Source: Magallana gigas (taxonomy: Eukaryota). From it: 64,000 nucleotides of DNA. Positions 33,587-56,876 of the stretch are shown here, piece by piece. The translations under genes and the position numbers were made by a program. Position 1 is the stretch's first letter, and each line of letters opens with the position of its first letter. The stretch covers positions 17,732,001 to 17,796,000 of the forward strand of contig NC_088859.1 in assembly GCF_963853765.1 (NCBI RefSeq). The letters run 5' to 3'. The notes below the pieces were generated by a model. It was not told where the DNA came from. It did no database searches and saw only the letters and a program-made list of their open reading frames with translations.

Positions 33587-34734
33587 TATCTTAGAACGAG
33601 CCATTCTAAATATTGGTTTAGGATCTTTTTTTCTTTCATTTTCATCAACCAAAGGTGCAATTTTTTTTTTGAAATCACTTTTTTCATTGTCCAATTCTAG
33701 AATTACTTTCATTCACATTTGTTATTTTTTATCTTTACATGTTTGTATGTGGCATGCTTAAATGCTGGCATTATCTTTTTACAGGATATGTCATTTAACT
33801 TCCAAAGTGATTTACAATTAAAGAATGGGAAAATGGATTTACTGTGGGTTTTTTTAACATCATGCATAATTTTTGTTATTTTGAAAACAAAAGGCAAAAT
33901 TTAATAATGCAACATAGTCTGATAGACAGCCCCAGTTAGCCAAAAATGGAGTAAAAATTGAACTTAAAGAAGCATAATATTGAGTAGTTTTATATATTCG
34001 GAACTTGAGCAAAGATCATTAAAGAATCAAGTTATTTCGGCAGCTTAATCAAAGTTCTAGAGGTTGATTAACATTTACAGTGACATGGTATGAGTTTTCG
34101 TTGCTTTAGCATTACGTAAAATACTGACGGCTTTGTTTTTACCAAACAATCAGGTTAATCGTATCGAGATGTATGCAGCAGTATATAAGATGTTGATTTC
34201 ACAAAAACATTATTTAGGAATTCCTTACAACAGAATTTTAATGCAACGTTGCCTTAATTTAGATAAAAAGAAAAAGGTATTAAAACTTAACCGTAGTGGA
34301 ATAATAATATATTTCCTTTAAAGGTATAGCTAGCATTGCAGAAAAATACATAACCTGCATAATTATATTTCATATTACGGCTGCCTTTTAGATAGTTGCC
34401 TTAGTTACTCTCGTTTGTTTCCGTGAAATCACGTGTCCAATTATCAGGTCACCTTTAAAATTACACTGGGCACATCTCTCATAACAAGAAATAATCTCAA
34501 GCAAACATTATCTTTGCTTAAGTTTATCCATACCTTGTACTCATATCACCGGAAGTCATAATTATTTTAGATAAGAAACAAAAACAAAAAAAAAACTGGC
34601 ATATATAGTAATTGAATAAATTTATTTTTAAATAAATTGTTAATTTTTAAGCAATTCACTGACAGGATATAACACAATTATTATTTTTCTTTCAAACTGA
34701 GGTAGGTTAGAGTAAAGGTGCTGAATGGAGCAGA

Positions 34735-37700
34735 CTATCTGATTCCAAAAAACTTCTTGATGCGGCGTACGAAGTTTGACTTCTTGCTTCTTTTGGTCTA
34801 AAACAGAAATTAGAATAAAATCAATGAGGAACACAGTTGCACCTTAATCTTAAGGAGACTGGATGGTCATCAAATTAACCATCAGATATATCTAGAATTT
34901 TAAGGTTCAATTTATTTAGTTATAATCTAATATTTAGTGAAGAAAAAATCCATATAATTAACCTTTTAACTTTTTTTGGGGGGGGTGTCTCTTTTTAAAT
35001 GGAACTCTTCTTCTAAATGAGATCAATTAAGTCTGAAAATGGCCACGACCATCGAGCCCTTAACTTAATGTAAATTTGCACACTATATAATTATGTACCT
35101 GATCTTTAGATGCCGAGAAGCTCTCACGTGTGTTGTCTTCAGAACACGTGACCAGAGGGGATGAAACTTGACATTCATCCTCCAGTTTAGTTGCGAGAGT
35201 TAGTTCCTTTCTTTTCTCAACCTTTACCTCATTTCAAACTACAATAAAAAAAAAATAAATGATGGTAAACACTCTACTCTTGACTTTGTGGGATATTTAC
35301 ATATTCAAAATTTATAAGTATCAAAATGAAGTGTGTAAATAAACTAAATATCGCTCATAGCGTTACTTTTGGATGTAACATAAAAACTACGATCATGATT
35401 TGGAGGACAGCTGTTTTGTTTTAAAGCTATGATTTGTTCAGTACCTTTGCAGTGCATCTGAACGTGTCCACTCCAAAAACGAATAATTTCCGAGGCAGAA
35501 AGTCTCCCTCTTCTTCAGGTTTCTCTACCTGGCACATCTATCAAACAAAACAAAAAGAAGCTGATGTTATTTTACTGTGAACAACGTACATGTATATATG
35601 AATGAACAGAAAATAATTAAAAATTGGTTTACTTGTACATTTAATCCGTAACAGTGGCTATGAATGACAAAAGAAACACGTAAATTAAGGAATATTTTTT
35701 GTGTATTTTAATTTCGCGGTTTACTTACCGTTGAGAAAAAAGTTTACAGATCACGTTATACACAGTGATAGTCCAGGTAACGAAGTTCGGGCTATCGCGA
35801 GTTACATGTATTTATGAATGCGTTCGGCAACTTACCATCAGGTCCCTGTAACCAAGTCGTTTGATCTGATCTAGCAGTTTTCTTTCATTCATCTTCGTCT
35901 ACAATAAACATAAAATGATTTGATTCACATCATGAAACGAATGCGTTGTCTTATCAGGTATACCTACACTATAGATTAAAGACTTATAAGTTTGTTTGAT
36001 AAAATCATAAAATTTGAGAGTGAATCAAGTAATTTCTTACAATATGTCTTTTACTCACCATCATTTCTTCCTGAAACGCTCTCTTGGCGCGATGCATGTC
36101 ATCTCTCTCTTTTACTTTTCTCTGTTAAAAGATTGAATGTAAATCCAGTTTGCAAAATGTTTTAATTTTAACTGTTGACAAAATTAAGAATAATGCTTTG
36201 CCATATAGAGATTACAAAATATATATATATATATATACATGTATATGTAAACAATTTTACGTCTCACCAACAGGTCTTCTTGAAGTTTCAGTAAATTTGT
36301 GTGGTTTTCTTGGAGCATTATCTAAATATAAAGAATTTACAATAACATGTATGAGTTAGATGAATGTGAAATTGCTTTCTTTTAATATAAAAGGAATAAA
36401 ATGAACTCTGAAATAGAATATTTTTATTAAATCGTTTCTTACCATGATTTTTCTCGCCATCTGGGGATTCCGTCTTGTTCTTATACTTCTCTATATAAAA
36501 AAAAGAAGAGACTTTTGCATTATGAGTGTCCCGTAAATGCGTATAAATTCACAGAGAAAATAAACTAAACGGAGAAATAACAGTAAAAATAAAGAAATAA
36601 GTGTAATGCATTACCACTAAGTGAACTAGAATATCATCAAGAAGTCTATCCTTTTTCTCTTTGTGCTGCAGAGATATATCAACTCACAATTAAGACAAAA
36701 TACTTTTAGTGAAAGACATTTGTTGTATAATATAAACGTAAAATTTATTTTCAAAGTAAAAGGTTATAATTACCATGCTTTCTCGAATGGCTTCCAATCG
36801 GTTTTCGTTCGCTTCCTATACAAGAAAAAAATCGACATTCTATAAACTAACACATATGAAATTAGTTATTGTTTAATGATATACATAATATGGCAGAGAA
36901 AAAATAACTTTTTTCTTGCATAATATCAAATATTATATTTACCGATAACTTGTTGAAAACATCTCCATTTTTCAATTCTTGACCTTTTTTCTCGTTCATC
37001 ACCATCTATAAATATTAGGAAATTGTTAATTCACGTATTCAATGTGTTAGATTTTACTGTGTGTCTGTTGGGGGGGGGGGGGGGGGGGGGGCTTGTAAAC
37101 TCACAATTAAGACAAAATACTTTTAGTGAAAGATATTTGTTGTATAATATAAACGTAAAATTTATTTTCAAAGTAAAAGGTTATAATTACCATGCTTTCT
37201 CGAATGGCTTCCAATCGGTTTTCGTTCGCTTCCTATACAAGAAAAAAATCGACATTCTATAAACTAACACATATGAAATTAGTTATTGTTTAATGATATA
37301 CATAATATGGCAGAGAAAAAATAACTTTTTTCTTGCATAATATCAAATATTATATTTACCGATAACTTGTTGAAAACATCTCCATTTTTCAATTCTTGAC
37401 CTTTTTTCTCGTTCATCACCATCTATAAATATTAGGAAATTGTTAATTCACGTATTCAATGTGTTAGATTTTACTGTGTGTCTGTTGGGGGGGGGGGGGC
37501 TTGTAAACATTTTTATTTAGTGCAGTTCAGTTTATTTTACTCAAAACTATGAAATGGTACATGAGGTACATGAACAAGTTTATTGTGTATGTCAAACAGA
37601 AAGTATATGGGATGAACAAACAATTTGATTAATTTTTAAGCCAACATACACAATTTTCGTAATATCAAATAGGGGTTGTTTTTTTTTTTGCATAATTTAA

Positions 37701-38149
37701 TTTCAACAAACTTTTTTAGTATTTGGGTATTAGGAACAATACAGCTATAGGAATTTCAATCTCTAGCGATGAAATTTCTGACAATTATATGAAAAATACA
37801 GATTGTTCAAACTACAAAATATGAATCCCACATACCAATAGCTCTCTGTGATTCTCCATCATCTTCTCGTGGTGATCTTGAATTCTTTGCTACATTCAAT
37901 TATAATGAAGTATTATTAAATGTATGTATAGTTGTGTACATTACAAATTAAAACCATGTTTACATAGCAAAACTTATAATCTTATACATGTACATGTAGT
38001 ATTAAGCAAAACTTAAATTCAATTATTTGATTTATTATTTAAAAAAATATATGCAATATCTTAGACATACCATAACTTTTTTAGCCATCTGAGGGCTTCT
38101 TCGTGGAAGTAATCTCTTCTGTAAATATTAAATTAGAAACTTAATAATA

Positions 38150-38224
<75 letters not shown>

Positions 38225-38712
38225 TTGACGTAGAATACTATACCAGTAACTCCACTTGAACATGTTCTACAATTCTACGTCTTTTGTCCTCAACCTGCAA
38301 TTATTGATAAATGATTAAAACTTTTTTTTTTAAATTTTCATCGAAACGAAATTATATGTATTTGATTATTTGAATATTCCTACAACTTAAAATTTCAGTA
38401 TTCGATCTGACGGTAGTGATTAAAAAAGGGCATAAATCATAATGTTGTTTTCAAAAATAAGCCATAGACCTACATTGAATATTACGTTTAATCTTTACTC
38501 TATTGCAAAAGCACGAAAATTTCAAGAAATAATGGTATTCCATAGTTCTGTGAAAGAATGAAGTGATGTGCTTACAAATGACATTTATAAGAATTATCAT
38601 AAAAAAAGGTTTGGCCGTGGCACGTTAACCATTGTTGTATGCTTTATGTTTTTGTTTCACTGAAAATATTATATTGTAAAATGCTTACCAAACTTTGCTC
38701 TATTTGATCCAT
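34735..38712 (-). CDS. Uncharacterised basic helical protein encoded by 13 short phase-0 exons (245 aa, or 224 aa if only one duplicated exon is used)
   Basis: Exons 5'->3': 38712-38689 MDQIEQSL; 38294-38244 VEDKRRRIVEHVQVELL; 38118-38071 KRLLPRRSPQMAKKVM; 37889-37836 QRIQDHHEKMMENHRELL; 37422-37360 and 37005-36943 MVMNEKKGQELKNGDVFNKLS; 36665-36615 HKEKKDRLLDDILVHLV; 36490-36443 RSIRTRRNPQMARKIM; 36321-36268 IMLQENHTNLLKLQEDLL; 36121-36059 RKVKERDDMHRAKRAFQEEMM; 35898-35836 TKMNERKLLDQIKRLGYRDLM; 35537-35445 MCQVEKPEEEGDFLPRKLFVFGVDTFRCTAK; 34797-34735 TKRSKKSNFVRRIKKFFGIR*. Every internal exon has canonical AG/GT sites, a length divisible by 3 and an open phase-0 frame. A probable non-coding first exon ends at the donor near 38846. 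Confidence 0.8.
36681..37508. repeat. Near-identical tandem duplication, about 417-bp unit, 2 copies, each containing one 63-nt exon
   Basis: AACTCACAATTAAGAC starts at 36681 and 37098. By eye the copies differ only by one SNP and poly-G length. Confidence 0.93.
38150..38224. repeat. (GATA)n microsatellite, with paralogous tracts at about 45407-45485 and 52781-52840
   Basis: Direct reading. Each tract sits in the same intron of its copy of the short-exon gene. Confidence 0.97.
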
Positions 38713-38910
38713 ATCGATAATCTAAAGTAGAAAAATATATATTTACATGTATTGTCACTTATTACAGTCGACGCTGTCATTCAATCGTGTCCAAAACAAA
38801 AGATGGAGTATTCTTAAATATAAATTAAAGAATTTAGAAATACCTTCTGCAAATATCCAGCGACTGCCTTTCTCTCAAAATATGTTGTGTTTTGTTTGTA
38901 ACAACTCTTG

Positions 38911-38952
38911 TGACGTTATTGATTTTGTTACGTCAGATACATTATGACGCAA
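38911..38952. promoter_or_regulatory. Cluster of three CRE/ATF-like TGACG sites in the divergent promoter region
   Basis: TGACGTTA 38911-38918, TTACGTCA 38928-38935, TGACGCAA 38945-38952. Conserved in cassette 2 (46174-46215), absent from cassette 3. Confidence 0.5.
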
Positions 38953-39321
38953 AAATTATAGCAATTAGAACGTCATTCGGGGTTTTTTCCGAATTAATCC
39001 ACGGCTGATATTAAATAAACTGTTGATGCGTCCTTTTTTCTTATTGTTGCAGATATACATGTTTATCGAATAAAATCATCTCTAGTGAGCATGATTTTCC
39101 CTTTGACTTTCACACAGAGACATCAATCCACGAACACCCATTTTCAATGCAATACGTTTGTATTTGTAAGGCAAAGTAAGATTTTTATTATTATAATTTT
39201 AATTAATCTTGGATTACAAGACTGTCAAGAACTTACAGAATTCCATACATATGTGTAGATACAGTTATGAGTGACAGAAATAGATCAAGTGTTTTTGTGT
39301 TTTAAGGGGGGTTCGTTTTTT

Positions 39322-40642
39322 ATTAAGGTCTTCCGTTTCCAACGCTTTGTTTCTTTTTCCCTTTTTTGTACAAGCGATTTCTTGAAAACGGCTTGACCGA
39401 TTTTCGTGAAAATTTCAGATCTTGTAGATATTGATAAAAACCTTATATATAATTTTTTATTTTGATGACGTCATTTCCGCTCGGGAGATATTGACGTTTT
39501 AGTGATTTTTAGAGGGTCATTTTGTCCTGCTATCTCCTCCTAAACGAAAAAAGATATTGAATTCAACTTTTCAGGATTTGTAGACAAAAGATTGTAGATG
39601 TGTTTAAAGGCATTTATGGTTGTCTGGCTTCAAAGGCGTCGAAGCTCGCCTGGACCCGAAAATCGAGTTTGAAAAAACGACGTAATTTTTAATGGTTTTC
39701 GTTCTTTATCTCCTTTCCTGAAAATATTTTACCATAACATATAGAGCAAATAAAATTTATATTTACAAGAGCTTTCATTTGATAACAAGAAAAAGGGGCT
39801 TAACCCTCAAATTAGGGGCTAAAAGGGCTCTAAAGTCTTTCTTCCATAGCACTTTACTGAGAAATATTTTGTAATATGTTTAAGAAGCAAAAATGTTCAT
39901 CTTTTACTAATAAAACTATACATCATAACATTTTCATTATGCGTTACGTAATTAGGGCTTTTAAGGGGCCAGAAAGCCAAAACTTCGATCGCATATGTCT
40001 CAAAAAGGACAAATATTTTGAAAAACAATATAGAATAAAAGATGCTTAGAATGATGTTTCAAACAATATTCAATCATAAAAGTTTCGTTATCTGGCCCCA
40101 ATAAGGAGATTAGGGGTCGGCCCCTAAAACGTCCTATCCCAGATAGCTCAAAAACGGCAAAGAATTTCTAAACACTTGTTGAACAAAATATGTTTAATAT
40201 CAAAAGAACTTTCGTATGATGCCAAGAAAAAGGGACTGGCCCTTCAATCTAGGGACCAAAAGGGCTCTAAAGTCTTTCTTTCATAGCGCTTTACTGAAAA
40301 ATATTTTGTTATATGTTTAGGAAGCAATAATGTTCATCTCACATTTATTTAACAATATATTATTATTATTTTATCTTGTGTTCCGTATTAGGGGGTTTTT
40401 AATGGGTTTTAAGGGACCAGAAGTACATACCTCAAACAGAACAAATATTTTAAAAAGCATCATTTTGAAAATCAATATAGAATAAAATGCTGAGAATGAT
40501 GTTCCTAACAAAATTCAACCATCAATTTTTTTTTGTTGCCCCGATAAGGAGATAAAGGGTCAAATATCAAAGTCAAGGTCATATAACCTTCAAATAATCG
40601 CACGGAAGACCCCCTCGTTGCTCACAACGAGATCGTGTCTAG
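39322..40642 (+). mobile_element. Helentron-type non-autonomous element (HINE-like), about 1.3 kb
   Basis: Subterminal inverted repeats AAGGTCTTCCG (39325) and CGGAAGACC (40603). 3' hairpin CTCGTTG-CTCA-CAACGAG (40614-40631). Internal direct repeat of about 435-bp period. T-rich site with no TSD. The paralogous empty site is at about 46575-46595. Confidence 0.8.
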
Positions 40643-41527
40643 TTTTCTATATATATTTTTTTTATTGTGGCGTTGTTGCAGGTATTGCATTACACTGTGT
40701 CGGGGCGGGGGTCTATCAACTGCGGGTTTGGATTTCAACCAAATACTAGGAAAATCACTCATCCGTCTTTACTTGGAATTTTGTCCTTTTTTTATATATA
40801 TCTCTATTTCCAACGTTCCTACATTTATTCACATGACCATTTAGACCAGTTTATGTTCAGTCAAGGTAAGTACCGTATTATTAAGTTGTTGGAGAAATCG
40901 CTTACTAATTTGCAAGACAGGAGAGAAACGTATTTTGAAACGAAAGTACATTATAATGTTCTTTGTGAAATATTATCATTTCGATAAAGTGTAATTAAAC
41001 AGTGATGTGATTCTTTACAAATTTACTCAGATTTCAACTTGAACACATATTCTGGTAATACGTATTTAAGTTTCCACATTCATTTTCATGTGTAACATGC
41101 AACATGCTTGACCGATCTGTGATTAATAGGTGTATATCTTTCACCAATGCGCTGTACCCTTTTTATACTATTCGGACTACAAGTATCTAAACCTTGTTGA
41201 CCAAATTTGCAAACATCATCCTTCATTCATTTTATGGTCAACGGATGCCTCCAGTAATGATAATCTTTTCTGCCTTTAAATGATAATAATCTCAATAACT
41301 GTGCTATTTGTTGCCTATTCCTAAATGCTTTCTTCATGTCTTGGTATCGATAGCTATAGGGAATAATCTATATATTCTATCATGGTTTCAATCCTGGCAA
41401 ATTAAGTGATTGATAACCTGAACTGGCCATAATATTAAACTCCGTCTTGGTATTCTTGACAATTCTGTATGTTTGAAGAAAGAAATTAATTTTACTTTTA
41501 AATTATATATTTTTCTTGTCATTTTAG

Positions 41528-43249
41528 ATGGATTCAATACCAGATGATGCTCAGCACATTATAGAGTGTGGAACCGAAAGCTGTGAAAGATATGGTGCTA
41601 TGTACTGCAACTCTTGTTACCGTTCAATGTGTGAACAGTGCAGAGATGACCATCTGAAGATTCCAGACAATAAGGGCCATGATGTGGTCCAATATCTATC
41701 AAGAAACCATAAAATCCCCGTGGAGAAGTGTAAGAAGCATCCAACCAAGGATTTAGATCTTCTGTGTGAAGAATGCCAAATTCCCTTATGTTCTAAATGC
41801 GCGAGTCAGGAAACCCACACAAGGCATAAGTTTCATGACCTAGAGAAATTTTATTCAGAAAATTGCCATTCCTGTCTAAAGACACTTCCAAGTATTCAAA
41901 ATTATTTCATTCCAACATCAAAAGAGCTGCAGACAGAAATTCAAGAAAATAAAGAAGAAATAAAAAGGGTCATGGAAAAAACCCGAAAAGAAGTGAAAGA
42001 AGATACAGAGTTCTTTAAAAAATTGGCGGACAAAGCAATGTCTGAAACACTGGAAGAGATTGATAGAGTCGAGGAAAAACTACTCGAAGAATTGAAATCA
42101 CAGGACAAAACTGTTGACGAGTACATAACATATCTTCAAAAGCTGGATAGAGAGATTCGTGAATATCTGTCTGCTTCAAAAGTTACAAACATTATAATCG
42201 AACACTCGAAAAATCTGGAGATACGACCAATACCAAAAACAACAAAACCCGTAACACCAACATACACTGTTGGTAAATACAGTAAAGAAGAAGTTTCAAA
42301 TCTACTTGGTAAGCTTCACGTTGACCAAACAAAACCGGAATTAAGACGTATAAAAGCTTTAGAATCGTGTACATCCACAAGCAAGGAAGTGAAAGGAGAG
42401 TATCAAAAGGCATCAAATGTTCAACAAACAGAGTCTCCTTCCGCCTCTGTTATCAAGGTTCGTGAGTTGACTGTACCAGGTGTTGAGCGTCTTTTCCATT
42501 TATCAATAGATACAGCAGAAAAAGTTTGGGCAAGCGATAATTCAGGTTACCTTGTTCAAACCGATCTTCAAGGAAATATGCTACAAGAAATAAATACTAG
42601 TAGACAAGGCGTTGGTTACCACACAGTCACAGAGAATGCCGATTTGATCTATGCAGACAGAGAAAATAAAGTCATTTATAAAAAATCCATGGATTTAAAA
42701 GAAGTATCTCCATTCATCAGAACTGATTGGGAGCCCATCAGCATACATTCTTCCCATAAAAATGGAGGAATATTTGTGGGAATGAAAAAGACCACAGGTG
42801 CGCGCAATTCAGATGCGAAGGTCGTTAAGTACAGCAAGTATGGAAGCTACCTACATTCAATACATAGAGACAATGACAGAAATTTATATTCTGAACCACA
42901 TTACATTACTGAGAACATTAATGGAGATATCTGTACATCCGATTCTGGAAAACAAGAAGTTGTGGTGGTCAATGAAGCAAGACAACACAGATTTTCCTAT
43001 AGAGGCCAGAGGTCAGCATTCAATCCATACGGAATATGCACAGATACACTTGGGCATATCATTGTTTGCGATGGTTATTTTAACAATGGTACAATCGACA
43101 TTATAGATACGGATGGCGAGTTCTTGACTCATCTTGTCTCTCAGTCAGGGATTATTCGTCCATACAGCGTGTGTGTGGATGACAAGAACAATCTCTACGT
43201 TGGGTACTCCTCGTCTAACACAATAAATGTGTACAAATATCTCCAGTAA
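41528..43249 (+). CDS. TRIM-like protein copy 1: two B-boxes, coiled coil, NHL-type beta-propeller, no RING (573 aa)
   Basis: B-box1 (C..C...C..C..MC..C...H) and B-box2 (C..H...DLLC..C...LC..C...H..H). NHL motifs PHYITENINGDICTSD, PYGICTDTLGHIIVCD, PYSVCVDDKNNLYVG. Acceptor TTTTAG|ATG; non-coding first exon with donor CAAG|GTAAGT at 40865. Confidence 0.93.
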   Translation: MDSIPDDAQHIIECGTESCERYGAMYCNSCYRSMCEQCRDDHLKIPDNKGHDVVQYLSRNHKIPVEKCKKHPTKDLDLLCEECQIPLCSKCASQETHTRHKFHDLEKFYSENCHSCLKTLPSIQNYFIPTSKELQTEIQENKEEIKRVMEKTRKEVKEDTEFFKKLADKAMSETLEEIDRVEEKLLEELKSQDKTVDEYITYLQKLDREIREYLSASKVTNIIIEHSKNLEIRPIPKTTKPVTPTYTVGKYSKEEVSNLLGKLHVDQTKPELRRIKALESCTSTSKEVKGEYQKASNVQQTESPSASVIKVRELTVPGVERLFHLSIDTAEKVWASDNSGYLVQTDLQGNMLQEINTSRQGVGYHTVTENADLIYADRENKVIYKKSMDLKEVSPFIRTDWEPISIHSSHKNGGIFVGMKKTTGARNSDAKVVKYSKYGSYLHSIHRDNDRNLYSEPHYITENINGDICTSDSGKQEVVVVNEARQHRFSYRGQRSAFNPYGICTDTLGHIIVCDGYFNNGTIDIIDTDGEFLTHLVSQSGIIRPYSVCVDDKNNLYVGYSSSNTINVYKYLQ

Positions 43250-44899: not shown

Positions 44900-45406
44900 A
44901 CAGCCATTTCTGACATTTGCTTTCCAAATTTGTGGATACTTGTATTCTATCCTTTTTTCTCATTGGTCGTCATCTGCAAATATTAATACATTGTAATTAA
45001 CGTATTCAATGTGCGAGATTTTTGTAGGGGGACGGGTGTACACATTAAACTCAGTTCATTTCAGTTTATACACTCTAAACCTTGGAATAGTACATGAGGT
45101 ACTCATGTACATCAATATATTATTGTGAATGTCAAACAGAAAATATATGGGTAAAGTAATTTTCGCGCTAACATACACAATTTCGTAGAATTATTATGTA
45201 TTATTTATACAGAGCAGAACATGGTTACGTATGAAAAGTTTTAATTTTATATATACATTGAATACGTGCTTTTATTTCAAACGCATTTATAAATTCAGGC
45301 ATTTAATTTTTATTTTTAAAAAATGTGAGAGTGCAACTTTTCTAGCCATCTGAGGCCTTCTTCGTGGAAGTAATCTCTTCTGTAATTATTAGATTAGAAA
45401 CTCTAT

Positions 45407-45486
<80 letters not shown>

Positions 45487-45983
45487 TTGACGTAGAATAC
45501 TATACCAGTAACTCCACTTGAACATTTTCTACAATTCGACGTCTCTTGTCCTCAACCTGCAATTATTGATAAAGGATTAATACTTTTTTTTTAAATATTT
45601 TCATTGAAACGAAATTATATGTGTATGATTATTTGAATATTCCTACAACTTAAATTTCAGTATTCGATCTGACGGTAGTGATTATAAAAGGGTATAAATC
45701 ATAATGTTGTTTTTCAAAAATAAGCCATAGACCTACATTGAATATTACGATTAATTTTTTCTCTATTGCAAAAGCACGAAAATTTCAAGAAATAATGGTA
45801 TTCAATAGTTCTGTAAAAGAATGAAGTGATGTGCTTACAAATGACATTTATAAAAATTATCATATAAAAGGTTTTGCTGTGGCACGTTAACCATTGTTCT
45901 TTGCTTTATGTTTTTGTTTCACTGAAAATATTATATTGTAAAATGCTTACCAAACTTTGCTCTATTTGATCCATATCGATAAT
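44900..45983 (-). pseudogene. Truncated, disabled copy 2 of the short-exon gene
   Basis: ATG exon (45983-45951) and 51-nt exon (45556-45506) intact. The 48-nt exon has lost its donor by deletion (about 45335), the 54-nt exon is deleted, the 63-nt exon has TAG at 44949-44947, and downstream exons are absent. Confidence 0.8.
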
Positions 45984-47571
45984 CTAAAGTAGAAAAATAT
46001 ATATTTACATGTATTGTCACTTATTACAGTTGACACTGTCATACAATCGTGTCCAAAACAAAAGATGGAGTATTCTTAAATATAAAACTAAAGAATTTAG
46101 AAATACCTTCTGCAAATATCCAGCGACTGCCTTTCTCTCAAAATATGTTGTGTTTTGTTTGTAACAACTCTTGTGACGTTATTGATTTTGTTACGTCAGA
46201 TACATTATGACGCAAAAATTATAGCAATTAGAACGTCATCCGGGTTTTTTTCCGAATTAATCCACGGTTGATATTAAATAAACTGTTTATGCGAGCTTTT
46301 TTTTTCTTAATGTTGCAGATATACATGTTTATCGAATAAAATCATCTCTAATGAGCATGATTTTCCCTTTGACTTTTACACAGAGACATCAATCCACGAA
46401 CACCCATTTTCAATGCAATACGTTTGTATTTGTAAGGCAAAGTAAGATTTTGATTATTAATTCTAATTAATCATGGATTAAAAGACTGTCAGGAACTTAC
46501 AGAATTCAATACATATGTGTAGGTACAGTTATGAGTTTCAGAAATAGATCAAGCGTTTTTGTGTTTTGAGGGGGGTTCGTTTTTTATCTGTTTTCTTTTT
46601 TTTTTATTGTGGCGTTGTTGCAGGTGTTGCATTACACTGCGTCGGGCGGGGTCTTTCAACTGCGGGTTTGGATTTCAACCGAATACTAGGAAAGTCACTC
46701 ATCCGTTCTTACTTGGAATTTTGTCCTTTTCGATATATATCTGTATTTCCAACATTCCTACAATCATTCACAAGACCAATTAACCCAGTTTACATTCAGT
46801 CAAGGTAAGTACTGCATTATTAAGTTGGTGAAAGAAATCACTTTCTAATTTGACAGGAGAAAAACGTATTTTAAAACGAAAGTACATTATAATGTTCTTT
46901 ACGTAGTGTTATCATTTTGATAAAGAGTAACAAAACGGTGATGTGATTCTTTACAAATTTACTCAGATTTGAAATGGAATGTGATACACATATTCTGATA
47001 ATACGTATTTAATAAAGTTTCCACATTTATTTTCATGTGTAACATGCAACATGCATGGCCGATCTGTGATTAACATTTGTATATCTTTCACCATGCAATG
47101 CGCTGTACCCTTTTATATTATTCGGACTATCTAAACCCTGTTGATCAAATTATCATACAGCATCTTTTAATCCTTTTTTATGGCCAACGGATGCCTCCCA
47201 TAATTATAATCTGTTCTGCCTTTAAATGATAATGATCTCAATATCTGTGCTTTTTGTTGCCTATTACTAAATGCTATCTTCATGTCTTGTTATCAAAAGC
47301 CGTATGGAATGTTCTATAAATCTATACGATTTTTTAACAATTTTACCGGGGAGTCAATAAAACTTCGCTATATCCCAGAATTTGTTATATCCGTGTTGGT
47401 ACTAACGAGTTTTACTGTATATTCATTGTAATTCAGTCTTGGGCGGTAATGGTTGCAATCCTCGCCAATTAAGTGATTGATAACTTGAACTTGAATTATT
47501 CATGACAGTTATGTAAGTCACAGTGAAGAAATAAATTAATTTTACTTTATTTATGTCTTTTGTCATTTTAG

Positions 47572-49296
47572 ATGGCTTCAATACCAGATGATGCTCAGCA
47601 CATTATAGAGTGTGGAACCGAAAGCTGTGGAAGATACGGTGCTTTGTACTGCAACTCTTGTTACCGCCCATTGTGTGAACAGTGCAGAGATGACCATCTG
47701 AAGAGTCCAGACAATGAGGACCATGATGTGGTCCTATATCTATCAAAAAACCACAAAATCCCTGTGGAGAAATGCAAAAGCCATCCAACCAAGGATTTAG
47801 ATCATCTGTGTGAAGAATGCCAAATTCCTTTATGTTCCTTATGCACGACACTGGAAAAACACAAACGGCATGGATTTGTCAACCTTGAGAAATTCTATTC
47901 AGAAAATTACCACTATTGTCTGGATAAACTCCCAAGTATTCAAGAGTATTTCCTTCCGAGATCAAAAGAGTTACAGACAGAAATTCAAAAAGATGCAAAA
48001 GAAATTGAAAGGATCATGGAAAACATTCGGGGAAAAGTAAAAACAGATATTGAGTCCCTTAAAAAATTGGCAGATGAAGTTATGTCTGAAATAATGGTGG
48101 AGGTCGATAAAGAAGCGGAAAAACTGCTTGATGAGATAAAATCACAAGATAAAACAGTTGATGAGTATATAACATATCTTCAACAGCTGGATGAAGAGAT
48201 TCGTGGATATCTGTCTGCTTCAAATGTTACAAACATTATAATCGAACACTCGAAAAAGCTAGAAATCCGACCAATACCAGAAACAACAAAACCAGTTGCA
48301 CCAACTTACACTGCTGGTCAATACAGTAAAGAAGACGTTTCAAATCTACTTGGTAAGCTTCACGTTGACCAAACAAAACCGGAATTAAGAAGTATAAAAG
48401 CTTTAGAATCGTGTACATCCACAAGCAAGGAAGTGAAAGGAGAGTATCCAAAGGCATCAAATGTACAACAAACAGAGTCTCCTTCCGCCTCTGTTATCAA
48501 GGTTCGTGAGTTGACAGTACCAGGTGTTGAACGTCTTTTCCATTTATCAATAGATACAGCAGAAAAAGTTTGGGCAAGCGATAATTCAGGTAACCTTGTT
48601 CAAACCGATCTTCAAGGAAATATGCTACAAGAAATAAATACTAGTAGACAAGGCGTTGGTTACCACACAGTCACAGAGAACGCCGATTTGATCTACGCAG
48701 ACAGAGAAAATAAAGTCATTTATAAAAAATCCATGGATTTAAAAGAAGTATCTCCATTCATGAGAATTCTTGATTGGGAGCCCATCAGCATAAATTCTTC
48801 CCACAAAAATGGAGGAATATTTGTGGGAATGAAAAAGACCACAGGTGCGCGCAATTCAGATGCGAAGGTTGTTAAATACAGCAAGTATGGAAGCTACCTA
48901 CATTCAATACATAGAGACAATAACAGATATTTATATTCTGAACCACATTACATTACAGAGAACATCAATGGAGATATCTGTACATCCGATTCTGGAAAAC
49001 AAGAAGTTGTGGTGGTCAATGAAGCAGGACAACACAGATTCTCTTATAGAGGCCAGAGGTCACCATTCAATCCGTACGGAATATGCACAGACACACTCGG
49101 ACATATCATTGTTTGCGATGGTTATTTTAACAATGGTACAATCGACATTATAGATACGGATGGCGAGTTCTTGACTCATCTTGTTTCACAGCCAGGGATA
49201 AATCGTCCATACAGCGTGTGTGTGGATGACAAGAACAATCTCTACGTTGGGTACTGCTCCTCTAACACATTAAATGTGTACAAATATCTCCAGTAA
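47572..49296 (+). CDS. TRIM-like protein copy 2: B-box x2, coiled coil, NHL (574 aa)
   Basis: Intact ORF paralogous to copy 1. Acceptor TTTTAG|ATG and first-exon donor at 46804. Confidence 0.93.
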   Translation: MASIPDDAQHIIECGTESCGRYGALYCNSCYRPLCEQCRDDHLKSPDNEDHDVVLYLSKNHKIPVEKCKSHPTKDLDHLCEECQIPLCSLCTTLEKHKRHGFVNLEKFYSENYHYCLDKLPSIQEYFLPRSKELQTEIQKDAKEIERIMENIRGKVKTDIESLKKLADEVMSEIMVEVDKEAEKLLDEIKSQDKTVDEYITYLQQLDEEIRGYLSASNVTNIIIEHSKKLEIRPIPETTKPVAPTYTAGQYSKEDVSNLLGKLHVDQTKPELRSIKALESCTSTSKEVKGEYPKASNVQQTESPSASVIKVRELTVPGVERLFHLSIDTAEKVWASDNSGNLVQTDLQGNMLQEINTSRQGVGYHTVTENADLIYADRENKVIYKKSMDLKEVSPFMRILDWEPISINSSHKNGGIFVGMKKTTGARNSDAKVVKYSKYGSYLHSIHRDNNRYLYSEPHYITENINGDICTSDSGKQEVVVVNEAGQHRFSYRGQRSPFNPYGICTDTLGHIIVCDGYFNNGTIDIIDTDGEFLTHLVSQPGINRPYSVCVDDKNNLYVGYCSSNTLNVYKYLQ

Positions 49297-50648: not shown

Positions 50649-51534
50649 TATATAATATATCAATTCATTTGACGTTATGAATGAAATTGTTTAATCATTC
50701 AATCGTTCATTTTTTGAAAGATACAGTCTCAAAACTGCAGTGGTGTAGGCATACAAATTGAGTATTACGCATTTGCTTTCAACACACTTTACCAGCAAAA
50801 AATATGTGGAATGTACGGTAAATTCCTTATTTTTACGCGAGTACTTAATTCCGCTATTCCACTGTTTTGCAACAAATCGCGAGAATATAAAATTGCGAAC
50901 AACTTTTTTTGGGTGTAAATCCATATAGCTAAAACTTGTCTAAAAAAGCGAGTTTTAAAATCGGTGAAGACTGCTTCTCGCGATTTTACGCAGATATTTA
51001 TTCCTCGTGTTTATAAGAGAATTGACAGTAAATACAAAATTTTAAATGTAATTTCAATATTTAGATTTTTCTCGCTCAATACCAGAAAATTAATTAGCTA
51101 TAACAACCTAAGATGAACTGAGTTGGGAAATAAACCGCCTCAAGATTTATAAAGCATTAACAGCCCCAATAATGAATGGCTACTTGTACAATAATTTGTT
51201 AATGAGAACATAACTTACAAAAAATTATTCTTGTATATAGGCACAGCTTTCTCTTTAACAACATAAAAAACTCGAGGTTCAAGGGCCAAATTCTCTTGTT
51301 TAGTTCAGTCTGACTATGACTTCCAATCGGTTTTCGTTCGCTTCCTTGATAATAAAAAAAAATCCGCATACATGTATACAGTCTGCATTCTCTTAACATT
51401 GAATATATTTTAAAGCCGCGTGTACAACACATTAAAATAGTGTATGTTAATAAGTTTAACTAGAGACATACCAGTATAACGAAAGACATATAATAACAGC
51501 CATTTCTAATTTTTGGATACTAGTATTCTATTTA

Positions 51535-52779
51535 CCGCTAACTTGATGAAAACATCCATATTCTCCAAAGCTTTTTTTTTTATTGATCGTCATCTGCAAA
51601 TATTAATACATTGTACGTAATTAATGTATTCAATGTGCGAGATTGTCGTAGGGGGGACGGGGTGTAAACATTTACTCAGTTCATTTCATTATATTTACAT
51701 CTACCAAGCATAATTTCCTCTATTTCTTACGGAAACTTATAGTTAATTCATAGCTTTATAGAAACAGCCAGACTGAAATCTACACGCCCTATTTATCGAT
51801 TGGTCGAAATCTACAGCGGCTGAAAGTGACAGGACTGAAATTGACACGCCCTGTTAATCGATTGGTCTGAACCTACAGCGACCTTAGTAAAATCCCAGAC
51901 TGCACGAAATAATCATGACGATGCCAGACTCAAAGTCTCACAGGAGACGATTTGGCTGGGTTTTTTTGCTAACGTACTTTTGTACATTAACAGTAATTCA
52001 GTGAATTTTACTAACTTTTCATAATCATTTTATTAATTAGTTAAAGAAAGATGTTAATATAAACAATTAAATGCTTTCTTTGGTGATTCATGCGGGTTAT
52101 GAAGGTAGCGATCATTGCAGGAAAAATTTACATAACCCACTAACGCGGGTTATGTATTTTTCCTGCAGTGTCGCTACCTTCATATCCCGCATGAATCACC
52201 AAAGGAAGCATTTTATTGTTTAATTAAACACTATAAACATTGGTATAATACATGAGGTACTCATGTACATGAACAAAAATAACGTATTTATATATCTAGA
52301 ATATTATTGTGAATGTCAAACAGAATATATATGGGTAAAGTAATTTTCACACAATTTTTTTATTTTTACAAAGAATTTTGCAGTCAAAATTTCATTTCAA
52401 CAAACTTTTTAGTGTTCGGGGCAAAAGTATTCCTTAGCATCATTAATCTCTAGCGAATAAATTTCTGATAACTATAAGAAAAATACAGATTGTTACACAT
52501 TGTACAAAATATGAACTGCACATACCAAAAGCTCACTGTAGGTCTGAATCATCTTCTCGTGGTGATCTTGAATTATATGCTGGATTCAATTATAGTTTAG
52601 CATTATTATGTATTATTTACATAGAACAGAAGATGGTTACGAATGAAAACTTTTAATTTCATATATATTGAATACGTGCTTTTTTTCAAACGCATTTATA
52701 AATTCAGATATTTAATTATTATTTTAAAAAATGTGAGAGTGCAATATTTTAGACATACCATAACTTTTCTAGCCATCTG

Positions 52780-52840
<61 letters not shown>

Positions 52841-52910
52841 TTAACGTAGAATAAATTACCAGTATCTCCACTAGACATTTTCTTCAACTCTACGTCTATT
52901 CACATCAAAC
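51535..52910 (-). pseudogene. Truncated, disabled copy 3 of the short-exon gene
   Basis: 51-nt exon homolog (52909-52860) has a 1-nt deletion and TAG. The 5' half of the 48-nt exon is deleted and the rest fused to (GATA)n. The 54-nt exon (52579-52526, HIIQDHHEKMIQTYSELL) is intact. The 63-nt exon is shortened and out of frame. No ATG exon. Confidence 0.8.
51700..52229. mobile_element. Insertion with a ~160-bp palindrome and a 62-bp direct repeat (possibly Crypton-like non-autonomous element)
   Basis: Absent at the paralogous site at about 45065-45075. Hairpin spans about 52061-52220. Direct repeats at about 51771 and 51833. No TIR or TSD seen; the family call is tentative. Confidence 0.6.
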
Positions 52911-53214
52911 TGAAATGATTGATAAAGAAATATCAATATTTTATTTTCATACATAATATGGTATAAAAAATATATGTATATGGTCTTAAGTTCCTACAAC
53001 TTTAGTTTCAGTATTTGATCTGACGGCAAGGATTTGAAAAAAGGTATGAATTAGAATTTTGTTTCAAGCAAGCCATACATATTACGTAAAAAAATTTTTT
53101 AATCTATTATTAAAGGAACATAAATTTATAAACAATGATATTCCTTAAATTCAGTAAATGAACGAACTAATGTGCTTACAACTAAAAATTTAAAAAGATA
53201 TAAATTTTTTTTTT

Positions 53215-54182: not shown

Positions 54183-55150
54183 GTCTTTTTGTTGCATATA
54201 TAAATCGAATAAATTTTCTCTTATGGGCGTTATTTTCCCTCCGACATTGATACATGCAGAGACATCAATTCATGAACACTAACTTACAATGTAATATATT
54301 TGTATTTGTAAGAAGAATTAATCAATCATGGATAAGGAGACTGTGAAGAATTCCATATATCAAAATAGGTACAATTACAGGTGATAATATTGCGTCGAGG
54401 GTTTTTCAACTGTGGGTTTAGATTTCAATTAAATACTTGGAAAATCACTCACCCGTCTTTACTGGGAATCTCTTCCTTTTCAGTTTCAGCCTTTATATCG
54501 TTATTTCCAACGTTCCTACATTTATCCACAAGACCATTTAGACCAACTTATATTCAGTCAAGGTAAGTACTGTATCATTTAGTTGTTGAAGAAATCACTT
54601 AATTTCAAGACAAGAGGGAAACATACTTTAAAACGAAAGTGCATTATGATGTTCTCTATGAAATATATAATTTCGATAAAGAGTAACAAATACGAGAATT
54701 TACTTAGATTTGAACTAGAATTCGATACACATATTCTGATTATACGTATATGTTTCCACATTCATTTTCATGTGTTATACAACACATCCGACCTGTGTGA
54801 TAAACAGGTGTATATCTTTCACCAATGCGTTGTACCTTTTTAAACTACTGGGACAATCGTAACCTTGTTCACCAAATTATCAATTCTTTCGTGATGGTCA
54901 ACGGAAGGCCCCTGTAATGATAGTTTTTTCAGTCTTTGAATGATAATAATTTCAGTAATTCGGGAGGGGGTGTCACCTATTTATGTTTGTAATCTAAATG
55001 TCTTGGTAGACAAACCCCATGTCAATTGTGCTTTACATTCAGTATTCATTGTAATCCAATCTTGAGCGATCAGGTTTACAATCTTGGCCCAGTCGTGGTA
55101 GCTAACGTGACAAATGTTTTACTTTATAGATATTTTTCATGTCATTCCAA

Positions 55151-56876
55151 ATGGCTTCAATACCAGATGATGCTCAGCACATTATAGAGTGTGGAACCGA
55201 AAGCTGTGAAAGATATGGTGCTATGTACTGCAACTCTTGTTACCGTCCAATGTGTGAACAGTGCAAAGATGACCATCTGAAGAATTCAGACAATGTGGAC
55301 CATGATGTGGTCCCATATATATCAAGAAACCGAAAACTTCCTGTAGAGAAATGCAAGACGCATCCAACCAAGGATTTAGATCTTCTGTGTGAAGAATGCC
55401 AAATTCCTTTATGTTCCTTATGTACGACTCTGAAAGACCACAAACGGCATGGATTTGTCAACCTTGAGAAATTCTATTCAGAAAATTATCACTTTTGTCT
55501 GGATAAACTCCCAAGTATTCGAGATAATTTCCTTCCAACATCAAAAAAGTTACAGACAGAAATTCAAGAAGATGCAAAAGAAATTGAAAGGATCGTGGAA
55601 AATATCCGGGGAGAAGTAAAAACAGATATCGAGTCCTATAAAAAATTGGCAGATGAAGTTATGTCTGAAATAATGGTGGAGGTCGATAAAGAAGAGAAAA
55701 AACTGCTCGATGAAATAAAATCACAAGATAAAACAGTTGATGAGTATATAACATATCTTCAACAGCTAGACGGAGATATTCGTGAATATCTGTCTGCTTC
55801 AAAAGTTACAAACATTCTAATCGAACACTCGAAAAATCTGGAAATACGACCAATACCAGAAACAACAAAACCGGTAACACCAACATACACTGTTGGTCAA
55901 CACAGTAAAGAAGATGTTTCTAATTTGCTTGGTAATTAAGCTTCACGCTGACCAAGACCAACCAAAAACAAGAAACATAAAACCTTTGAAGTCCCGTACA
56001 TCCACAAGCAAGGAAGTGAAACAAGATTATCCAAAAGCATCAACTGTACAACAAACATGGTCTCTAACTGCTGGCACCAAGATTAAAGAGTTGACAGTTC
56101 CTGATATTGGGTGCATTTTCCATGTATCACTAGATAAATCAGACAAACTCTGGGTAAGCGATAATACAGGTAACATTTTCCAAGTCGATTTTCAAGGGAA
56201 TATGCTGCAAAAAATATGCACTAGTTTGCAAGGTTTTGGTTACCACACAGTCACACAGGATGGAGATTTTATCTATACAGACCGAGAGAAAAAAGTTATA
56301 AATAAAAAGACTAAGGATAAAGAAGTAGCTGTATTCATCAGCGGTGGTTTTTGGGAGCCCATCAGCATACATTCTTCCCTTAAAACTGGGAATATAGTTG
56401 TGGGAATGAAAAGGACTGCAGATGCAAAAGTCGTCAGGTACAACATTAATGGAAGTTTTAACTACACGATATACAGAGATATCAACGGCAAAAAACTATA
56501 TTCTGAACCACGTTACATTACGGAAAACATTAATGGGGATATATGTACATCGGATTTTGAAAAACAAGAAGTTGTGGTGGTCAATGAAAGAGGACAACAC
56601 AGATACTCCTATAGAGGTCAAAGGCCATTGTTCTATCCATATGGAATATGCACAGATACTCTTGGACATATCATTGTTTGCGTTTATTCGAACAAAGGTT
56701 CAATTGACATTCTTGATCAGAATGGTCAGTTTTTGTCTCGCCTACTTGAGTCACAACAAGGGATAGATTGTCCATACAGCGTGTGTGTGGATGACCAGAA
56801 CAACCTTTACGTTGGACATTTCTCTAATAACACACTGGATGTGTACAAGTATCTTCAGTGTTCTTCCCCGTCGTAA
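55151..56876 (+). pseudogene. TRIM-like copy 3, split by a 4-bp insertion into a B-box/coiled-coil ORF (stop at 55939) and an NHL ORF (to 56876)
   Basis: GGTAAGCTT in copies 1 and 2 versus GGTAATTAAGCTT here (55931-55943). The acceptor AG before the ATG has become AA (55149-55150). The paralogous stop is lost, adding CSSPS. Confidence 0.85.

Follow-up and report, generated by a model that had tools for sequence, protein, structure and literature searches.

LOC105322411 is a minus-strand gene of Magallana gigas, contained in the 64,000-nt stretch analyzed here (the window; contig NC_088859.1 of assembly GCF_963853765.1, forward-strand positions 17,732,001 to 17,796,000, numbered below from its own first letter), and its database product is a protein of 285 amino acids (P0061; XP_019920277.2; UniProt A0A8W8I368, A0A8W8I368_MAGGI) titled "uncharacterized protein LOC105322411". 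An earlier note drawn from the sequence had presented the gene as hidden; it is already catalogued under these RefSeq and UniProt entries, although its annotation on this assembly is fragmented, and while its oyster family is undescribed the architecture is of a known kind. A literature search by the LOC, XP and UniProt identifiers, and for oyster micro-exon genes, found no paper on LOC105322411 or its relatives.

Exon structure and transcription of LOC105322411

The exon chain was found by listing every open segment bounded by AG and GT, followed by a check of the borders. The first exon (E1) of the main copy of the gene, at 38844-39323, is a 5'-untranslated region (5'UTR) exon with no ATG within its last 63 nt, and the start codon lies in E2 (38689-38721, 33 nt) at 38712-38710 (MDQIEQSL). 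E3 (38244-38294, 51 nt), E4 (38071-38118, 48 nt, carrying the kink PRRSPQMAKKVM) and E5 (37836-37889, 54 nt, AG/GT-bordered and joined in RNA) belong to module A of an internal repeat. They are followed by E6 (37360-37422, 63 nt) and E7 (37191-37232, 42 nt), each of which has a second copy in the window (36943-37005 and 36774-36815, respectively), and then by module B: E8 (36615-36665, 51 nt), E9 (36443-36490, 48 nt, with the helix-breaking RRNPQMARKIM kink), E10 (36268-36321, 54 nt) and, as its last member by length, E11 (36059-36121, 63 nt). The C-terminal part is encoded by E12 (35836-35898, 63 nt, TKMNERKLLDQIKRLGYRDLM), which is joined in RNA contigs; E13 (35445-35537, 93 nt), an acidic patch followed by the signature motif GDFLPRKLFVFGVDTF; E14 (35099-35238, FENEVKVEKRKELT...SASKDQ), which measures 140 nt in the window and 141 nt in all RNA contigs; and the last exon, E15 (34604-34797), whose AG acceptor is followed by 60 nt of coding sequence (34738-34797, TKRSKKSNFVRRIKKFFGIR), a stop codon at 34735-34737 and a 3'UTR that runs to a poly(A) site near 34604.

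Every exon is bordered by an AG acceptor and a GT donor. The 13 consecutive internal coding exons and the 60-nt coding end are all in phase 0, so that codons are never split, and the internal coding lengths (33-51-48-54-63-42-51-48-54-63-63-93-141 nt; median 54) are all multiples of 3, for which we calculate a chance probability of (1/3)^13, about 6e-7. Among the 12 exons E2-E13, 11 terminate in a hydrophobic L, M or V.

RNA contigs of two runs from different studies, X1 and X3, contain every junction from E13 to E1, spliced GT-AG (CT..AC on the plus strand), at 35537/35836, 35898/36059, 36121/36268, 36321/36443, 36490/36615, 36665/37191, 37232/37360, 37422/37836, 37889/38071, 38118/38244 and 38721/38844. 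Three polyadenylated Logan mRNA contigs of 1.5-1.7 kb from three runs (L024-L026) hold the complete exon chain, and their product, P0059, matches the residues of the exon model save a few allelic differences. For E15, L024 aligns from 34799 to 34604 and there terminates in poly(A), and a piece of an X3 contig covers 34663-34797. Individual raw reads of X22, a stranded poly(A) run, span three joints with first mates on the plus strand, which, as in most stranded libraries, indicates RNA of the minus strand. LOC105322411 is transcribed from the minus strand, GT-AG spliced and polyadenylated.

These data bear directly on the earlier note. The five peptides it quoted lie on the minus strand where it had put them, and the spliced gene of canonical phase-0 exons that it proposed is borne out, the RNA contigs joining the predicted exons exactly at GT-AG borders. 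Its count of 13 exons of 24-93 nt needs revision: the supposed 24-nt first exon is the end of the long 5'UTR exon and has no ATG, the 141-nt exon, which at 140 nt breaks the frame in the window (35099-35238), went uncounted, and the 63- and 42-nt exons are doubled in the window by a 417-bp duplication. The gene limits it gave, 34735-38880, were too narrow, since the 5' end extends beyond them.

Internal exon repeat and exon skipping

The length pattern 51-48-54-63 is present twice in the gene, as modules A and B, just as the earlier note had reported. Compared in register, the two modules score 90 by BLOSUM62 as against -37 +/- 18 for shuffled sequences (z=6.9), a value that 0 of 20000 shuffles equaled. 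The signal is confined to the first three exon pairs, E3 with E8, E4 with E9 and E5 with E10 (scores 24, 47 and 25), whereas the 63/63 pair of E6 and E11 scores -6 and is dissimilar. Because the likeness sits in these three pairs the duplicated unit is taken to be of three exons, and modules A and B are an old duplication of this unit, possibly of four exons; the repeat of about 72 amino acids put forward earlier is significant over three exons (51 amino acids).

E3 and E4 are cassette exons. E4 is missing from the 1109-nt mRNA contig L027, whose protein P0060 keeps the frame at 269 amino acids, while E3 is bypassed by the X1 joint 38118/38689, with a depth of 78 for skipping versus 64.5 for inclusion and a short side of only 28 nt, and E2 by the X1 joint 38294/38844. 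L027 differs in a further respect, for its nt 1-211 hold a different 5'UTR, 85% like window positions 54884-54739, and then a segment resembling exon 6 (78%), a hint that the transcript starts in yet another copy upstream, or that the contig is chimeric. Separately, a (GATA)19 microsatellite occupies 38150-38224 in the E3/E4 intron.

An oyster family defined by two motifs

Homologs of LOC105322411 were gathered with a profile built on E13 only, and subsequent searches used database records. E13 alone found 21 matches in the same genome (single exon, E<=10), and a profile of ten E13-type exons found 40 (E<=0.01), clustered on C3, C5, C6, C7 and C9. Against 1.84 billion representative proteins this profile returned 55 matches, of which all that bear names are from Ostreidae, namely Crassostrea/Magallana gigas, C. 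angulata, C. virginica, Saccostrea cucullata or S. echinata, under titles that are either "uncharacterized" or compositional (golgin-like, trichohyalin-like, titin homolog). A profile made from the alignment of the full family returned 5 proteins only, overwhelmed as it was by low-complexity words, and is uninformative on range.

The family signature consists of an acidic patch and then F-[LV]-P-R-K-L-F-x-F-G-x-D-x-F, and occurs about 40 times in the genome. E13 of LOC105322411 reads EEEGDFLPRKLFVFGVDTF, scores 70.8 bits against the family profile, and carries the acidic patch with a broader form of the signature, F-[LVI]-P-R-[KG]-L-F-x-[FTI]-[GND]-x-[DES]-x-F; the invariant columns of the E13 alignment are F, P, R, L, F and F. 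The second motif is C-terminal, R-x-[KR]-[KR]-F-F-G-x-[KR], in its full form [ST]-x-x-x-R-[VLIF]-[KR]-[KR]-F-[FL]-G-x-[KR] directly before the stop codon. The C-terminus of LOC105322411, SNFVRRIKKFFGIR, which ends at the stop of 34735-34737 and was aligned with 21 relatives, has this motif, and both motifs are conserved across the 22 members. The stretch PRKLFxFG-VD may resemble the RxL stretch with which CIP/KIP inhibitors dock to cyclins, and the tail may resemble basic calmodulin-binding helices; no conclusion here relies on either likeness.

Members of the family are 200-500 amino acids long with helical units that vary in number. As judged on the exon maps of LOC105322411 and of its C7, C5 and C6 paralogs, together with the helices of the AlphaFold2 (AF2) model described below, phase-0 exons of some 42-78 nt, among them the R-R-x-P-x-M-A-K-K kink exons, code for the helical N-terminal part. 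The exons of the paralog LOC109620796 (51-45-54-69-42-51-48-54-63-63-93) are likewise AG/GT-bordered between whole codons, and the two isoforms of LOC105337229, P0007 (345 amino acids) and P0008 (500 amino acids), arise from one locus and differ by whole exons. At C7:21345269-21356231 the RefSeq isoform P0071 consists of nine exons of the upstream paralog and the last four exons of the downstream paralog, and is a case of splicing between tandem family members. The tandem paralogs at C7:21.34 Mb have a dN/dS of 0.22 and are 92% identical in exons versus 85.5% in introns; the allelic pN/pS of LOC105322411 is about 0.4.

Features of the protein and its predicted structure

K, R, E and L are abundant in the protein, which is highly charged (K+R 22.5%, D+E 17%). 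Its N-terminus, MDQIEQSLVEDKRRR, is charged, with the AF2 helix starting at residue 2, and judged from these letters it has no N-terminal signal peptide; none of 22 relatives has a hydrophobic N-terminus.

The AF2 model, built on the 22-member family alignment, predicts three long helices at residues 2-28, 34-115 and 120-191, which are interrupted only at two conserved R-R-x-P-Q-M-A-K-K kinks (PRRSPQ and RRNPQ), that of E4 at residues 29-33 and that of E9 at residues 116-119. Mean pLDDT exceeds 85 at residues 41-60, 81-110 and 121-180, with 10-residue block means reaching 96. Residues 195-270 (about 75 residues, pLDDT <50) are predicted to be disordered and open with the acidic patch and signature motif, after which a short basic-aromatic helix is predicted at the C-terminus, residues 274-281 (RRIKKFFGIR).

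No Pfam family scored above its cut-off in 10 members of the family, a phmmer search of PDB sequences gave no match (best E-value 0.84), Foldseek found no fold match in the PDB (best E-value 4.5), and a search of the ESM Atlas gave no usable match.

On several points, then, the earlier note anticipated these results. A lineage-specific gene is what the oyster-only named matches among 1.84 billion proteins indicate, a modular one is seen in paralogs and RefSeq isoforms that differ by whole phase-0 exons, the helical character agrees with AF2, and the splicing potential it inferred is realized for E4 in L027 and, on the weaker evidence of short X1 joints, for E3 and E2. The protein whose repeat it could not recognize matches no characterized family in Pfam, PDB sequences, Foldseek/PDB or the ESM Atlas. 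The two outcomes that it had named as refutation, no spliced reads across the junctions or a clear match to a characterized family, did not come about: spliced RNA crosses the junctions and no characterized family matches.

The allele in the window

RefSeq has only two truncated models on this assembly, each ending by intron read-through: P0067 (121 amino acids), which spans E2-E7, and P0068 (164 amino acids), which spans E6-E13. The split can be explained by two features of the window, a 417-bp duplication and a 1-nt deletion in E14.

In E14 one A of GAAAAT is missing, and the normal frame reads F-E-M-R-stop, four codons into the exon. The X1 and X3 contigs have the extra letters TCAAA at the joint 35234/35445, L024, L026 and L027 read FENEV, and P0059 and P0061 contain FENE. 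The duplication is a tandem one (36681-37499; two copies of 417 bp at 99% identity, found with Tandem Repeats Finder) that holds E6 and E7 twice, both copies keeping AG/GT. It is young and adds 105 in-frame nt. In every case the mRNA contigs have one copy of E6/E7, with the joint 36665/37191. Each 417-bp unit ends in poly-G, in runs of 23 and 14 nt (37070-37092 and 37487-37500).

A possible but less probable account of these differences is that the locus is a damaged allele, perhaps non-functional, that yields truncated products only. The length of E14, 140 nt in the window as against 141 nt in RNA, with the resulting stop, argues for this, as do the short RefSeq models with their read-through ends and a 1.33-kb insertion in the first exon of the main copy. 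On the other hand, if an AG lying 11 nt further downstream were used, so that the exon began at 35227, E14 would return to phase 0 at a cost of four residues; the 417-bp duplication is in frame; and an intact first exon is available in a second copy of the gene's 5' end. The window differences could moreover be polymorphisms or assembly errors, and the assembly holds no alternative haplotig of the locus.

Copies, neighbors and insertions at the locus

The second copy is a partial 5' end on the minus strand at 45332-46757, 95% identical to 38074-39300, with an intact first exon (46107-46757), E2 (45951-45983) and E3 (45506-45556), and an E4 (45332-45379) that lacks a donor. A third, degenerate copy of E4-E7 on the same strand (51316-53181; 68-88% identical) has an in-frame stop in its E6 homolog and has lost splice sites.

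The origin of the mRNA's first exon was traced by the letters that distinguish the copies. Nucleotides 171-656 of L024 align at 94% to the main first exon (38844-39323) and nt 1-160 to 40818-40656; within the main first exon, homology to the mRNA ends at 39323, where the 1.33-kb insertion starts. Of the 34 diagnostic sites in exon 1, L024 and L026 match copy 2 at 24 and 31, respectively, whereas in E3 and E4 they have main-copy letters at 8/8 diagnostic sites; the RefSeq model P0067, too, links copy-2 E2 and E3 to main E4. The mature mRNA probably takes its promoter and first exon from copy 2. Transcription would then start at copy 2, with splicing across a B-box/NHL gene into the main exons, although the animals behind these contigs may instead have a different haplotype structure.

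The sequence inserted relative to copy 2 occupies 39324-40655, has an internal direct repeat (39722-39962 and 40159-40399) and probably represents a mobile element. At 39313-39400 there accumulate many RNA reads whose ends are rearranged.

The window contains three tandem units, each an intronless open reading frame (ORF) for a B-box zinc finger and NHL (TRIM-like) protein on the plus strand (41528-43249, 47572-49296 and 55139-56876) that stands head-to-head with a copy of the minus-strand 5' end of LOC105322411. The third of these ORFs is probably broken, because it is split into two. A functional link between LOC105322411 and its B-box/NHL neighbors was considered and rejected, there being no comparable long ORF beside five other family loci, where the ORFs were listed only and not scanned against Pfam.

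Three further features were recorded. An interspersed repeat of about 210 bp lies in the last intron (34845-35080), with >1000 candidate copies genome-wide on all chromosomes (74-79% identity), and accounts for pieces of RNA contigs that have loose ends at 34863 and at 34902. On the minus strand, a 373-aa ORF at 696-1817 has HTH_29/HTH_23 and DDE_3 domains and is therefore assigned to a Tc1/mariner-type transposase, and a 428-aa open frame at 21107-22393 has no Pfam match.

Discussion

LOC105322411 is one of about 40 members of an uncharacterized oyster-restricted family, and we consider it somewhat probable that its protein is an intracellular helical spacer or adaptor of adjustable length. 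Given that all exons are symmetric, a helix segment could be duplicated, lost or skipped with the frame and both C-terminal docking motifs left intact; as exon gain and loss is frame-neutral, helical rods of differing length would be combined across the family with an unchanging C-terminal "business end". The conserved signature would, as a linear motif, bind a partner, and an acidic surface, whether a membrane or a calmodulin-like protein, would be the target of the basic amphipathic C-terminus.

Several points weigh against this proposal. The spacer or adaptor role is deduced from sequence features only. The pTM of the AF2 model is 0.27, so the packing of the helices is not informed by it, and a homodimer prediction with two copies of residues 1-195 scored 0.00 with an uncertain fold, which is evidence neither way. 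The oyster-only range comes from a 31-residue profile that could miss diverged relatives, and the skipping of E2 and E3 is the weaker evidence because its joints have 26-28 nt on one side and come from the single run X1. Finally, the window haplotype, with its frameshift in E14, duplicated E6/E7 and interrupted first exon, may not make the full protein.

The micro-exon genes (MEGs) of schistosomes, to which the earlier note had likened the gene, are the closest known architecture. As far as PMC4350168 sets them out (with DeMarco et al. 2010 as summarized there), the coding region of MEGs is mostly very small symmetric exons whose skipping yields protein variants; every product bears a signal peptide and is either secreted or anchored in a membrane, and platyhelminths are the only group from which the genes are reported there, with high dN/dS. 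LOC105322411 is similar in that its coding region is mostly short symmetric exons with frame-keeping skipping that gives variants, and in that its family is lineage-restricted, tandemly expanded and without known domains. It differs in exon size, its exons of 33-141 nt (median 54) being above the usual micro-exon size, in its charged N-terminus and almost wholly helical predicted protein, and in a family dN/dS of 0.22, and there is no sequence relationship. The likeness therefore holds for the architecture; with no signal peptide, larger exons, purifying selection and no homology, the gene does not itself belong among the MEGs.

Whether the likeness goes deeper is a separate matter. It is doubtful, if conceivable, that oysters independently evolved an MEG-like architecture for a repertoire of combinatorial intracellular adaptors of graded length, in which rod length would be the regulated variable: the repertoire would come from symmetric exons together with continuing exon duplication, the splicing of cassette exons and splicing from one tandem copy to another, and one docking motif and one C-terminal anchor would be common to all.

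More improbable still is a true functional analogy, in which combinatorial skipping would give rise to a varying set of proteins that are exposed or secreted, for example in immunity. Short symmetric exons, exon skipping, tandem lineage-specific expansion and the adjoining TRIM-like B-box/NHL arrays are what such an analogy would draw on. Yet the N-terminus is charged, not hydrophobic, in the protein and its relatives, whereas a signal peptide is found on all MEG products (PMC4350168), the dN/dS of 0.22 denotes purifying and not diversifying selection, and TRIM-like neighbors were unseen among the ORFs listed at the five other family loci.

Other repeat proteins are built from symmetric exons, among them fibrillar collagen (54-bp exons), nebulin, titin PEVK and tropoelastin. 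As in these, one exon of the oyster gene would correspond to one structural sub-repeat, borders share a phase, and length changes by exon duplication or cassette splicing are frame-neutral; but those are ancient, widely conserved structural proteins with known folds and partners, whereas the oyster family is small (about 200-500 amino acids) and oyster-only, and its repeat is a charged helix ending in H-x-E-L-[LM]. As a functional analogy only, a variable helical rod followed by a short conserved C-terminal targeting element also recalls golgin-type tethers, from which LOC105322411 differs in having no GRIP, GRAB or TM anchor, no Pfam match and a rod of only about 190 residues; the homodimer prediction (score 0.00, uncertain fold) speaks neither for nor against dimerization.

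That the gene is a diverged member of a known family of long coiled coils (golgins, trichohyalin or titin-like proteins) is very unlikely. The automatic NCBI names "golgin subfamily A member 6-like", "trichohyalin-like" and "titin homolog" and the long charged helices of the AF2 model point that way, but 10 members gave no Pfam family at cut-off, the PDB gave no sequence or fold match, and the names vary between paralogs, as is expected of compositional matches. Nor, to our knowledge, do these families possess the signature motif or the C-terminal tail, which are the conserved parts of the oyster family. Finally, that there is no gene here and the short AG/GT-bordered frames are open by chance, of which AT-rich DNA does yield many (154 candidates in 5 kb), is refuted by spliced polyadenylated RNA, database proteins, conserved paralogs and purifying selection, and is given virtually no weight.

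For annotation, the locus demonstrates that a small duplication and a 1-nt indel are enough to split one gene into two truncated reference models, and about 40 oyster genes with misleading automatic names ("golgin-like", "trichohyalin-like", "titin homolog", "H3K79 methyltransferase-like") can be regrouped by two motifs. For the biology of the family, this one locus displays an old repeat of three exons, a duplication of two exons whose copies are 99% identical, 5' exons contributed by partial gene copies, and the skipping of cassette exons, and it provides a testable example outside the flatworms of a family encoded almost wholly by frame-neutral short exons.

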